NCBI GenBank assembly: GCA_964035545.1 | Contig: CAXIUT010000305.1 | Coordinates: 1-20,504 of the forward strand | Direction of reading: 5' to 3' | DNA length: 20,504 nt | Source: Bugula neritina | Taxonomy: Eukaryota; Animalia; Bryozoa | Shown here: positions 1,334-18,636 of the stretch, piece after piece | Position numbering within the stretch: position 1 is the stretch's first letter | How the letters are laid out: each line of letters begins with the position of its first letter | Notes under the pieces: generated by a model | The model's input: only the letters and a program-made list of their open reading frames with translations | Database searches by the model: none | Told to the model about the DNA's origin: nothing | Made by a program: the position numbers and the translations under genes

Positions 1334-2509
1334 ATGAGATCTGATCCAAGTCGATATTCTGAGAGAAAAAATCTCTCTAAGCAAGTACTTCTTAAAGAGA
1401 ATGTGGAGGAAATAAGTCAAGAACAAGATGGAATCTATAGAATAGCAGCCAAAGTTAGATTTCTTTAAGATGATGTAAACAATATCATTCACCAAAACAA
1501 ATAAATAGTTGCTTAAAACAAATGTCTTAACAACAGACAAAGAGAACTTTAGCTTGAATTACAGCATTAATAATCTTAAATATCTTAACTTTCTTTGCAA
1601 GTAGAACAATAACTGGGTATTGGAGAGTCTATATTTGCTTATTAGACTGATTTGGTTGCAATAGGGAATAATATCAACTCTCTTCACAATCGTATTAACT
1701 CCAAAGCTAAAAATTTATAAGTTTTAAAGATGGAAAAAGACTTTCGAATAGAGCAGCAATTAAAACTGAAATAAAATAATAACATATTTGCATATGAAGA
1801 GAATAGATAGATTTAAATAATAAATATATTGTATCAGCAACATTTATTCAATAAATAAAGCTGTAATATTGAAAAAGAATAGGTTTAGACTATTATATTA
1901 AGGTGTTAATAATTTTCAAATAAACTTAGTTTAAGAGAAAAAGGACTAAAGGATTTAATAAAATAAAATTCAAAAGAACTAGTCAATGATAAATAGAAGA
2001 TAATAAAAAGTTCTTTTTAACTAAATAGATTACATCAAAAGTTAAATGATTATAATAAACAAAGTAACTCTCTAAAAAAATTGTTCAATTACTAAAATCG
2101 AGACATCATGATTGACTAAATGCTCCGCGAGTAATAAATGTTCTAACACTAACTTAACAATAAAAATAAAAAATACCATCTTTTGATGAATTAAAATACA
2201 AAAATATCCAATAGTTTAGTTTAAAAATTTTATTAAACTAAAAAAAGTATTTAAAAAGACTTGAAAAAAGAATAGTAATTACTAAAATAAGAGTCATATA
2301 TTCATTGTTCTTTATAAGGTTAGTTGCTAGCTGCTAATCGAAAACTTTAAAATATACTAGTTTCAAGGAATATTATCTACAATTAAACAGACAATCCTCC
2401 TCTCAAACTAAATATCAAACAACTTTCAAATTTATACCTTCAATTATAAATATAACTTGCAGAAAAACTAACAGAACTATCAATGATCAAATCATAACTA
2501 TCTATCTGA
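1334..2509 (+). CDS. Hypothetical coiled-coil protein (~391 aa; alternative in-frame ATG at 1292)
   Basis: TGA-free frame from 1292/1334 to TGA 2507-2509 in table 30; E/K/N/L-rich, heptad-like (RQRELELELQHEESEISELSLQVEQE). No recognisable family motif. Confidence 0.7.
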
Positions 2510-2612
2510 TACTAATTTATATATAGATTTAATAACTGCTATTTTCAATCAATTTGTAAAGATAAATTTCAATATAAAACTTATCTTTTTCAATATCTAT
2601 TATTTATTCATA

Positions 2613-2832
2613 TTATTCTGCACTATCTGTCTTGTTACTAGATTATTTCCCATTATTACTACACTATCTGTTTTATTACTATACTATCTGTCTTTGTTTC
2701 GACACTATCTGTCTTTGTTACGGCACTATCTGTTTTATTTCTAGATTATTGGCCTTTATTACTAGATTATTTGCCTTTATTACTATACTATCTGTCTTTG
2801 TTTCGACACTATCTGTTTTATTACTAGATTAT
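2613..2832. repeat. Minisatellite, ~11 degenerate 19-21-bp units (e.g. TTATTACTAGATTATTTGCCT / TTGTTTCGACACTATCTGTCT)
   Basis: Units directly visible in tandem; one further unit resumes at 3134-3154 beyond the GC-rich insert. Confidence 0.85.
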
Positions 2833-3135
2833 CTCACAAAGAGAGCGAATGGATAGGTACGTTGACCTCGAAGCACAGGAGACTTCTGGGGGCGTACCGG
2901 TCAGGGGATGCGATTCTGGTGGAGGCTATGAAGATAGCCACCAAGGAATTCCCTGACATCTCCACATCAGAAATCCTCCACGGATCCTAATAGCCATAGC
3001 TACCGGAGCCGCCTCCTAAGGACCGAGGCCCAACGACTGACCTGAAAGGGTCAGAGGTTTAAGTCTAGCAGATACCCGATGACCTGTAAAAGCCCTAGAG
3101 GCAGACAAAGGACACCAAAAAACTTTGATTGATTG
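2833..3135 (+). mobile_element. Putative 5'-truncated non-LTR retroelement/retroposed insertion (303 bp)
   Basis: ~53% GC (hand count, 2841-3120) in an otherwise very AT-rich window. Flanked by the 13-bp direct repeat ATTACTAGATTAT (2820-2832 and 3136-3148). Carries a frame open from the 5' boundary to TGA 3126-3128, then a (TTGA)3 tail. No RT or endonuclease motif is visible, so the class is inferred. Confidence 0.5.
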
Positions 3136-3196
3136 ATTACTAGATTATTTGCCTGAATATTATTTAATTTATAATAAAGAAGATATTAAATTTTGA

Positions 3197-5632
3197 ATGG
3201 GTTCTTCAAAATCTCAAGTTTTTAATAAAAATCGATAGTAAAATATTTCTGTTCCAATATCTTTAGACCTTTCTGAAGAATCATATCTTGAAAATGAAGG
3301 CAAAATAATATTGTTGGGTCAAACAAGAACTCACTCTAAAGTGGTTGAATGTGACCTGGTGTTTAATTCTTTAAAAAGCATTTCAACTAGAATCCACATT
3401 CCTCTTCCAACGATTCATTTGAATTCTTTAAAGAAATTATCAGATTGGTCTACAATAATGTCTCATGAGGGTTTAAATCAATAGCCTCCTTTCAGTAAAA
3501 TGTTTTGTCTTTCTCTTAGAAACCATAGAATCTTTATTTGTGGAGGGTGCGACTTCGAAGGTTTCAATGTGAGGAAAGAAGCCTTTTACTATATCAGACT
3601 GGAATAAAGACTCAAAAATAGAAAAGATCGTTATTCAGTCAATAAGAAAGATAAGAATAAACCTCAACTTTAAAATAATGGCTTTTAAAAACTATCCTCA
3701 ATGAAAGAAAAACGTCATTCTCACACAGGAATCTACTGTAGTTCATTAAAATCTATTTTAGTCTTTGGAGGAATTAATCATCTAAACGAAATCATTAGCT
3801 CTTGTTAAATCTATGACTCTTTAAAAAGTAGTAATGATATTATTTTAGATTAATGGACTAATTTACCTTCAATGAAAAGGTCTCGTTCGAATGCTCATTG
3901 TTTCTAGTATAAGAACAAGATATATGTTTTTGGAGGCAGGTCAGTCAAAAACTATTTACCAAATGATATTGAAGTATATCTTCTAAATTCAAAAAAATGG
4001 TAACTTTTAAATGTAAATGCAATACTATTTAGTTTAAACTTCACCAAGGAATATAAAAAGCCCTTATTTTTTCTTTAAAATAGCACTAAGTATTGATAGT
4101 TGGAGGCTAAACTTCCTACTCTAACAATAAAGTCATCAACAAAATTAATCTCTAATAAAAAACTTATATCTTCCACTCCTAACTTCCCAAAAATTCTCCT
4201 TCTCCTAAAGGAAATAGAACAAATAAGAATGAACTTTTCTTATTCGGAAATTAAAAGGAACAATCTTATATATTTTATGATAATGAATGGATATAAAAAA
4301 AACTTGCCTACAACAATCTCATCTAACCAGAAGATCTTCCTAGCTTTTCTTTTTCTAAAGAAAGTCTTATTGTTAAAAGTTCACCTACTATTACGACCAA
4401 ATAAAAGATAGAGCATTAAGAGGAAGAACTTTTCTTTGGAAATGATCAATATCCTTGTCTTCTTTTTTATAATCCTAAATCAGGATCCATTACAATGGAA
4501 AGTGTTCCTACTTCTATTAGACTGAAGTCAAAAATGTAGGTGCTTAAACTTTAGTTTGGAAAGTATGTTCTTTTAGGAGGTTCAGACCACACTCTTCATT
4601 AATCATCTAGAAATTGTTTTTTATATAACAAAACCAACGCTTCTGCCTCTGAAGTGACCTAAATGATAAAAAAAAGAAGTAATTTTTCTGTTGTTTATGT
4701 CTCAAATTATATTTACGTTTTTGGAGGTTTCGATTATGAAACAAAAAGAGCTCTGAGAAGTTGTTAAAAGTATAGTTTATTGGAGAATGAATGGAAGGAA
4801 ATAGAACCACTAGGAAGAAGTAGATCTGGAAGTCGAGCTGAAACAATATCTAAGAATAAGATTGCTATCGTAGGAGGATTCATTGAAGAATCTCAAATAG
4901 GATAAATCTAAATGTAAGTTTTTCTAATCAAGATACAACATATCAACTAATACAATTGAAGTATTCTTTCCTAAGACAGCCATTCTTGGTACTGCATCTC
5001 TTTTGTTCTCTTTCTAGGAAGAAAAATCATTTTATTTGCTGAGTAGTCATCAAAATAAATTTATTTATTCCAAAATAACTTATGATAAAAATAACAAAGG
5101 TTCTTAGAAATAAGCATCAAACAATTTTTAAAGTTAAAAACAAGAACAGATATCGAAAAGAAATTATCTTCTCAAAATAAAATAGGAGAATTAAGATCAA
5201 CTAAAAAATAAATAGAAAAAAGAAAATTGTTTCTCATCAGAGGAATAAGTATCTTTGGATTAAACTATTATTTCAGAAATACAAAAAAGGTAACAATTTT
5301 CAAGTGAAATGATTTCAGGGTAGTTGTTGTAAAAAACAGAGTCATAAAGATCTCGTCAAAAAGGATTAACTCTTGACTTAGGTCTTTAAAAATACTCCAA
5401 TCAATCATCTTTCAACTAAGTTCCCTAAAATGTATATTCTGTTGTTACGGAGCATTAAAAATCATAAACTCTATTTAGCCGTAAGAACTACATTGGTTGT
5501 CTTATTTGTAAAAGAAAAGATATATTTTACTTTATTCGAAATAAAGTAATTGAACAAATTAGGTTTGATGATTTGTTTTTAGATGCTAAAAAAGTTAATT
5601 CCTAAAATTTAAAACTCTAATGGCTCACTTGA
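3197..5632 (+). CDS. Kelch-repeat beta-propeller protein (~791 aa), predicted N-myristoylated
   Basis: ATG GGT TCT TCA AAA TCT (MGSSKS); repeated kelch GG...Y...W motifs (ILVFGG..SCEIYD..NEW, IYVFGG..SCEKYS..NEW); introns 3828-3848 (21 nt), 4013-4032 (20), 4914-4932 (19); TGA 5630-5632. Confidence 0.88.
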
Positions 5633-17035: not shown

Positions 17036-18349
17036 TCAGATGAAGTCATCGTCTTCTTCCTCGTACTCTCCTTCTTCATAAATGAAGTTGTCGATATCAA
17101 TTTTGTAACGCAAAAAGCCTCCTAATCCAGAAAATCCTTTTAGAAACTGAGTGCCTTCAGGAGATTTATCAGTGACAAACTCTATTTCACATCCGAAATC
17201 TTTGTAGTGCATAGATAACCATTCAGGCAGAGAGGTAGGTTAGTTTTCTTCTTCTATTTTCTATAAACTCACCTCAGTATCTTTGTCTTTATAGAGATCA
17301 GGATTGTTGATGTTATCTGGTTTGATGTAAGCTGATGACAGTTATCCTGTTTAACTGTTTCTGAGTCTTAATCTTATGTAATCCAGGTCTTCAAAACAAA
17401 CGATTCTGCCAACAGTTCCTGATTCGATCAGCTTCATTGTTTCCTGGACACCATACACAACCAGATTATCTCCAAGAGCAATGTGGTCAAAAAATTAGGA
17501 AATAAGTTTTTTTTATTTTATAAACTTGAGGTTTGTTAAAGATTCAGCTGATTTTTAAATAGCTTGATTGAGTCCATTTTAAAATCCATAGGAAACATCT
17601 ACAATGTTAACAACTTTAGTTTGAAGTCTAGGATCAAACATATCTGTTTTATTGAGATCATTTTTAAAGTCAGCACTACCAGCCAGCACCAATCCAGTCA
17701 CATTACAAGCATTGTCAGTTATAAAACATTGAACTGCTACCTAACACACCTTCCTTAAATAGTTATGTCTCTTCTACATCCTTAAACGAGCAAAACGTAC
17801 TGAAGATTGTCCTCCTTTGTGATGCTTTTTTGGCAACTCGACAGTAAACTTATTAATAATATCCCGAGCGTTGCCCTGAAGAGTAGCATAGAGAGCTCCA
17901 TTACCATCCACTATTATAAAACCAAAAGGAGGCTCACTGATTAGGAGTTATTTTTTAAGCTCTTCCAAATAAAAACGAGAATCACAGTTATAAATAGATA
18001 AATTAACAGGTTTGAAAGGCTAGAAATCGCAGACAAGTTTTTTCTATGTGGTTGAGTTAGCATCCATTATTCTTCCACAGAATAGAACAAGCCCGTTTTA
18101 GGGAGCTCGTTGATAAAGTTTAAGTCTTTACCTGGCAGCCATTTGAGCTTCAACAACACTTTGTTTATTAGACTTGTCTTTAATCTGTGATGCTCTTCCC
18201 ATTTATTCGTTGAGCAACTTAGTACACTATGATACGTTCTTTTTGGGAGGCATAATGATAGTCACTACACTGCCATTAATTTTAGCTGTTTCTAATCGAT
18301 AGAAAAGTTTCTTCATCCGGAAGATCTCGATAGAATGGTCCGCCTACAT
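17036..18349 (-). CDS. ERF1: Eukaryotic peptide chain release factor 1 (eRF1), 437 aa, variant-code type
   Basis: Intronless in table 30; [29 protein letters not shown] (YxCxxxF), [76 protein letters not shown], acidic tail; TGA stop. Confidence 0.97.
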
Positions 18350-18564
18350 CTGTTGAAATATTTATATTATCAATCAACCCACAACACTTAATATCAACAT
18401 TTCTTTTATATTCTTTAATTAAAATATAATTCTGACTTTCATCTTTTTCTTGATTTAAATTTATATTTATCAACAATAATATTCTTTCAAAAAAACCTTT
18501 TACAAGATAGATAAGGCTTAACGGTTCTTGTTAATAAAGAAGGCAAAGACAAGATAAGTACCAA

Positions 18565-18636
18565 GGGCGATTGGTCTAGTGGTATGATTCCTGCTTTGGG
18601 TGCAGGAGGTCCCGGGTTCAATTCCCGGATCGCCCC
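18565..18636 (+). tRNA. trnP: tRNA-Pro (anticodon UGG)
   Basis: 72 nt; acceptor GGGCGAT/ATCGCCC, D-arm TGGTCTAGTGGTATGA, anticodon arm CCTGC-TTTGGGT-GCAGG, T-arm CCGGG-TTCAATT-CCCGG; followed by a T5 Pol III terminator. Confidence 0.96.

Follow-up and report, generated by a model that had tools for sequence, protein, structure and literature searches.

The GC-rich block of 303 bp described here is a genuine insert flanked by a target-site duplication (TSD). It is probably the dead 3' end of an element from an unclassified non-LTR family, LINE-type by its hallmarks only, and would have been inserted by target-primed reverse transcription. It lies in a window (the whole stretch of DNA analysed) that is a complete contig of 20,504 bp, C314, with CCCCAA repeats at its left end and GGGGTT repeats at its right end. 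The contig has about 30% GC, and only TGA interrupts its reading frames. It is a telomere-capped somatic minichromosome of a ciliate with the peritrich code. The assembly from which it comes (321 contigs, 216 Mb in all) combines a small number of very large non-ciliate chromosomes with hundreds of small telomere-bearing contigs.

The genetic code of this ciliate was tested on the window's eRF1 gene (17039-18373, minus strand), which has 19 in-frame TAA or TAG codons. We aligned it to the eRF1 exons on C1, which belongs to the large-chromosome organism, an animal. Because eight of the 12 alignable TAR positions fall on Glu, including invariant positions such as DF-E-PF and RLRM-E-KRH, UAR is read as Glu in the ciliate. 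The window holds some further features of its own. A tract of about 15 GGGGTT repeats lies mid-contig (11081-11173), oriented as the right-end telomere, which suggests an alternative fragmentation site or two joined minichromosomes. An intact tRNA-Pro(UGG) gene at 18565-18636 (plus strand) is the sole Rfam or ARAGORN match in the window.

Table 1. Features of the insertion and its surroundings, in window coordinates.
Feature	Coordinates	Strand	Basis or properties
Minisatellite of 21-bp period, the target; insert within its last unit	2613..2834	.	TRF and sequence
Intact paralogous unit TTATTACTAGATTATTTGCCT, identical to the rebuilt empty site	2756..2776	+	Sequence comparison
TSD, 5' copy, 13 bp, ATTACTAGATTAT	2820..2832	+	Sequence, exact repeat
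Inserted element	2833..3135	+	303 bp, 51.5% GC; 85% identical over 2850-3134 to G000:C163:22241-22522(-)
51 codons open to the 5' edge, coding remnant	2835..2987	+	GC3 0.67, 0 TAR, 5 GAR; syn:nonsyn 10:8, p=0.002
46 further codons in the same frame; Glu-rich acidic ORF tail or 3' UTR	2988..3125	+	7 TAR; divergence 4:11
A6 run preceding the tail (A7 in copy 2)	3117..3122	+	Sequence, copy comparison
(TTGA)3 tail, holding the first in-frame TGA (3126-3128)	3125..3136	+	Sequence, copy comparison
TSD, 3' copy, 13 bp, ATTACTAGATTAT	3136..3148	+	Sequence, exact repeat
ORF of the next gene (context)	3197..4093	+	Starts 48 bp past the TSD; insert in its upstream region

The block is an insertion with a duplicated target because it is bounded by exact 13-bp repeats and its removal rebuilds an intact minisatellite unit (Table 1). 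Joining the flanks through one copy of the TSD gives the 21-mer TTATTACTAGATTATTTGCCT, which is found intact once more at 2756. This look-alike of the empty site, 60 bp from the insert, provides an internal control for a retroposon-type insertion. Flank repeats of at least 12 bp that abut the span were seen in fewer than 0.1% of random 300-bp stretches of this DNA. The insert also stands apart in composition from its flanks (about 27% GC), and it is the only GC peak of such height in the window (0.50 versus 0.22-0.35 nearby). An earlier note, made from the sequence of this stretch, had described the identical TSDs, the minisatellite unit regenerated by removal of the insert, and a (TTGA)n tail that overlaps the start of the TSD, and each of these was borne out. 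The length and GC-richness that it gave also stood, but its figure of about 53% GC is corrected here to 51.5%. Empty-site alleles, which it had proposed as a check, did not turn up in the assembly, which has no second contig of the locus.

The insert is intergenic, with the upstream ORF stopping at 2506. The product of the gene at 3197 (plus strand) has MGSSKS at its N-terminus, which may be an N-myristoylation site. Of the 690 bp that separate this gene from the preceding one, 316 belong to the insert and its duplication, and the gene's promoter may perhaps have been displaced.

A DNA search of the whole assembly, also proposed in the earlier note, returned one further, diverged copy, on the minus strand of contig C163. 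The two copies share 85% identity over 285 bp, with three 1-nt indels. C163, which is 22.6 kb long, ends in telomere repeats about 50 bp away from the copy. A separate 12-bp direct repeat, TTATTAATATTA, flanks this copy; in shuffles matched for composition, a flank repeat of 12 bp arose in 1e-4 of trials. With two copies, separate TSDs and a common tail, the insert belongs to a repeat family. Both copies are found less than 3 kb from a telomere and are alike in orientation to it, with the tail facing inward. Neither has terminal inverted repeats. Copy 2 carries three frameshifts and a CGA-to-TGA change.

The 3' ends of the two copies are alike. Each consists of a run of six or seven A, one or two bases, and (TTGA)2.5-3, and they stop at the identical point. 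In copy 2, the A7 run is followed by C and then by TTGATTGATT. In the window copy, the last A of (TTGA)3 is also the first base of the 3' TSD copy, and the tail has TGA in all three frames. A pattern search that allowed three mismatches found the same 3' end nowhere else in the 216 Mb. Nor is (TTGA)n a general gene-end signal, being absent at 13 host stop codons. At the other end, the starts of alignable sequence in the two copies are no more than about 10-17 nt apart, and their first 13-17 nt cannot be aligned. Such near-coincident 5' ends would be unlikely under random 5' truncation, and the 5' truncation claimed in the earlier note is accordingly doubtful, with both independent copies (n = 2) starting so close together. 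The coincidence could reflect a truncation hotspot, a discrete non-autonomous element of about 300 nt, or trimming of a longer germline element during DNA elimination.

In the whole 216-Mb assembly, where the ciliate genome is only partly present and searches for copies and for a parent gene are limited to that extent, we found no further DNA copy and none longer than about 300 bp. A six-frame search of the assembly with the 51-aa piece encoded by the 5' half returned nothing besides the known copies. The longer copies with reverse transcriptase (RT) or APE domains that the earlier note had hoped for were found by neither route, and no family member in the assembly bears either domain; the RT matches lie on Mb-scale animal contigs (C1-C9 and C192). 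Dozens of near-identical RT ORFs on these contigs encode 961 aa, and others about 1,500 aa; they appear to belong to active LINE and LTR families with no relation to the insert. An origin from the host animal was also considered and rejected: the large-chromosome contigs match neither the DNA nor the peptide, and their RT genes are unrelated. Other GC-rich islands, examined in about 190 kb of further small contigs, proved to be genes (e.g., beta-tubulin), telomere tracts, or coding repeats, none of them related to the insert or flanked by TSDs. Three small contigs (L019, L020 and L024, i.e., G000:C12, C13 and C17) have 43-50% GC throughout, versus about 30% for the ciliate contigs, and may come from a third organism or the host.

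As the earlier note stated, one frame is open from the 5' boundary of the insert, with an ATG only at about 2928. The frame is in fact open from 2487, has no in-frame ATG before 2928, and meets its first TGA at 3126. We assessed its divergence by projecting copy 2 onto copy 1 and permuting the substitutions with their kinds preserved. Over codons 2850-2987, this frame has 10 synonymous and 8 non-synonymous differences between the copies (p=0.002). Four of the five other frames give 1-3 synonymous versus 16-17 non-synonymous differences over the same span, and the fifth, which is antisense, gives 8 versus 11. Given this bias of one frame to synonymous changes over 2850-2987, the 5' half derives from a gene on which purifying selection acted as the lineages of the two copies diverged. 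The same pattern is seen between LINE subfamilies. From 2988 to 3125, the ratio of 4:11 is the neutral expectation (p=0.49).

Where the ORF ends is less clear. Seven in-frame TAR codons, at 2988, 2991, 2997, 3060, 3066, 3087, and 3096, led the earlier note to propose an ORF end written in the UAR=Glu code; the codons and the host code are as it described, but the end itself is ambiguous, with TAR occurring only past codon 51. For an ORF running to TGA 3126, the region from 2988 on has eight TAR trinucleotides, seven of which fall in this frame (p about 0.003 to 0.008). The frame is also free of TGA before the tail, where the other frames have three each (p=0.09), and its GC by codon position (0.57, 0.37, 0.59) is coding-like. 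The copies also differ by two GAG/TAG exchanges. Against such an ORF, the final 46 codons contain all seven TAR, the first 51 being free of them (Fisher p=0.004), and TAR relative to GAR goes from 0/5 to 7/9 (p=0.02). The selection signature, moreover, ends exactly at the TAA-TAG of 2988-2993. This split in TAR use and selection would be expected of a standard-code ORF followed by a 3' UTR of about 135 nt. We give roughly even odds to a host-code reading that runs to TGA 3126 and to a stop at TAA-TAG 2988. With the stop at 3126 the 3' UTR would be 0 nt long, and with the stop at 2988 about 135 nt, in either case followed by (TTGA)3.

GC-richness alone is no proof of foreign origin, as the ciliate's own beta-tubulin gene (L017, G000:C10, about 1519-2841, minus strand) has 45.6% GC, a GC3 of 0.44, 37 GAR codons, and no TAR. 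The highly expressed genes of this ciliate, to go by beta-tubulin, appear to shun the reassigned codons. The GC3 of the insert's constrained part is higher than that of beta-tubulin, and the 3' regions of the host are AT-rich. Because the constrained part has such a GC3 (0.67), is free of TAR, and ends at TAA-TAG, an origin under the standard code is possible. The insert might be what is left of a LINE family whose composition is foreign to this genome, one that may have arrived horizontally, used the standard code at first, and favoured subtelomeric sites in a fixed orientation, but we hold this fuller account to be rather unlikely.

The 51-aa piece had no credible relative by phmmer among 1.8 billion proteins, nor did one appear in the contig collections. 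Three HMMER matches (P0001-P0003) were rejected as tandem-repeat proteins, whose E-values arise from summed matches of about 21 bits with 8/17 identity. A word search with the same piece found no relative either, and neither search showed similarity to the LINE ORFs of Paramecium or Tetrahymena. The ESM Atlas gave only unnamed clusters below 0.9, and a scan of 185,579 prokaryote genomes found no relative. Five pieces searched against Pfam at E up to 10 gave no match, FCD included. A virus-derived insert was rejected as well, with no IMG/VR match by pattern or by protein. By these searches, the element family is without detectable relatives.

The possibility of an RNA gene was followed up separately. 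Rfam gave no match for the insert at the gathering threshold or even at E up to 10, a result the earlier note had named as bearing against its interpretation had a match appeared, and ARAGORN found no tRNA-like region. Folding of either strand was no better than that of shuffled sequences (z-scores of -1.6 and -1.4). RNAalifold on the two copies predicted 71 pairs, none of them compensatory, and the GGCTAT/ATAGCC and CTGACC/GGTCAG hairpins are, by eye, weakened in copy 2. With no Rfam match, no significant fold, and no compensatory pair, the reading as an RNA gene is rejected.

A retroposed LINE-type fragment would account for these observations as follows. An endonuclease encoded by the element would nick the two strands of a minisatellite unit at points 13 bp apart. 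The RNA would then anneal through its (TTGA)n end to the nicked target by microhomology, the duplication starting with ATTA. Reverse transcription would copy the A-run, the 3' region, and at least the last 51 codons of the ORF, and repair of the staggered cut would produce the 13-bp duplication. The insertion presumably took place in the germline, and the copy may have been kept through macronuclear development and stayed on the somatic minichromosome because it is short and intergenic. The hallmarks fit target-primed reverse transcription: each copy has its own TSDs, the 3' end is a fixed A-run and tetranucleotide repeat with microhomology to the target it overlaps, there are no terminal inverted repeats, and the ORF is open to the 5' edge. 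Nicking and copying fits, and cut-and-paste transposition does not, because the TSDs differ in length (12 vs 13 bp) and terminal inverted repeats are absent. The earlier note had arrived at a truncated, unknown LINE-like copy; the TSD, the tandem-repeat 3' end, the family, and the coding signature are in keeping with that, but no longer copy and none bearing RT or APE was found. The note had also called the copy young, a description based only on its perfect 13-bp duplication and unbroken frame.

Other explanations can be weighed against the same evidence. The block may be complete as it stands, a discrete non-autonomous retroposon of about 300 nt (SINE-like or derived from a LINE 3' end) mobilised by a partner LINE that recognises its tail. 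In its favour, the independent copies start within about 10-17 nt and finish at the same base, both have TSDs, and no longer copy is found in the assembly. We consider it unlikely, however, as there is no tRNA-, 5S-, or 7SL-like head and no Rfam similarity, the first 13-17 nt of the copies do not align, and the excess of synonymous differences in the first 51 codons would be unexpected for a non-coding element. The near-equal copy lengths would also be explained if the germline element were much longer and were mostly deleted as an internal eliminated sequence (IES), with an excision boundary set by sequence; the tail would be kept, and the 5' edge would be an excision junction. The 169 REP tails retained in Tetrahymena offer a precedent (PMC6564038). 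In both copies, however, an intact 5' TSD abuts the retained part, so that the left boundary of the IES would on each occasion need to lie only a few bases from where the element begins, which makes trimming of this kind a rather slim prospect.

A retrocopy of the 3' end of a highly expressed ciliate gene, made by a LINE enzyme (i.e., a processed pseudogene), draws on the resemblance between beta-tubulin (45.6% GC, 0 TAR and 37 GAR) and the first 51 codons of the insert (GC3 0.67, 0 TAR and 5 GAR). It is nevertheless improbable: both copies finish in (TTGA)n and not in a poly(A) tail, no parent gene is found in an assembly that represents the ciliate in part, and the second half, at 51% GC and rich in TAR, is unlike either host 3' UTRs or highly expressed coding sequence. 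Marginally less probable still is a functional family of small RNA or small protein genes near telomeres that is not mobile. The GC-richness on an AT-rich background and the two copies less than 3 kb from a telomere in the same orientation speak for such a family, but the flanking duplications and the restored repeat unit point to insertion. There is also no Rfam match, significant fold, or compensatory pair, the hairpins are broken in copy 2, and that copy has three frameshifts and an in-frame TGA, with no in-frame ATG before 2928 in the frame. Finally, captured foreign DNA, such as the 3' end of a bacterial GntR/FCD regulator stopping at TAA 2988, would be compatible with the GC content and with the TAA-TAG at 2988 as a bacterial gene end, and one GntR/FCD protein encoded on a metagenome contig has 14 of 22 residues identical to codons 10-31. 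That match, however, was picked out of 241 million records through an exact 8-mer seed, and 32 bits is what chance gives at such a scale. Pfam FCD does not match, no relative occurs in the 1.8 billion proteins or 185,579 prokaryote genomes, and capture would leave the two copies with their separate TSDs and shared repeat tail unexplained, so that this origin is barely credible.

Taken as a retroposed LINE-type fragment, the insert can be compared with elements already described. The LINEs of Paramecium (groups 1-5) form a ciliate clade, their 3' ends are short tri-, tetra-, or pentanucleotide repeats, and LINE sequence makes up 0.84% of the DNA destined for the macronucleus (PMC5405496). In Tetrahymena, the macronucleus keeps 169 REP tails, and the Tt.REP tails are of 54 bp (PMC6564038). 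The insert is like these elements in its oligohymenophorean host, its short-repeat 3' end, and the retention of fragments in the macronucleus. It differs in having no detectable similarity to LINE proteins (the 51-aa C-terminal piece being what was tested) and no RT or APE, in being far richer in GC than its host (51.5% vs 30%), and in residing in a host with the peritrich code. LINEs of the RTE clade have short or very short 3' UTRs with AT-rich tetramer ends; SR3, for example, has a 177-bp UTR and (TAAG)n, with duplications of 10-12 bp (PMC1291365). With RTE-1, SR2/SR3, and Bov-B, the insert shares an ORF that ends near the 3' terminus, a short 3' UTR, and AT-rich tetramer repeats, and truncated 3' parts of RTE-clade elements yield short non-autonomous elements. 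This likeness is structural only, as the clade is defined by RT and APE domains that the insert does not have. SINEs with LINE-derived tails are similar in their size of about 300 nt, near-coincident 5' ends, LINE-type repeat tail, and TSDs. In contrast to them, the insert lacks a pol III-type head (tRNA, 5S, or 7SL, by Rfam and ARAGORN), and its 5' half has coding-type substitutions.

The earlier note had also stressed that the copy is retained in the soma. This is true, the contig being somatic and telomere-capped, but it is not unusual given Paramecium and Tetrahymena; remnants of LINEs have been described before from the somatic DNA of ciliates, and somatic retention is unsurprising. For peritrichs, we found no description of transposons in the searchable literature, and a comparative-genomics paper on peritrichs omits them. 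Two dead copies without an enzyme-coding relative open no new question by themselves, and the significance of the insert alone is modest. What it offers is a clean instance of retroposon-type insertion in a peritrich-code ciliate, on a somatic minichromosome. It also suggests that in this ciliate, as in Paramecium and Tetrahymena, short retroelement fragments escape DNA elimination or are tolerated by it. The split ORF, in which a constrained, TAR-free half is followed past TAA-TAG by a neutral, TAR-rich half, provides a handle on how mobile elements face stop-codon reassignment. If the family did originally use the standard code, translation in a UAR=Glu host would continue past its TAA-TAG stop to the TGA inside the (TTGA)n tail, and the insert would show a standard-code mobile element working across a genetic-code boundary in nature.
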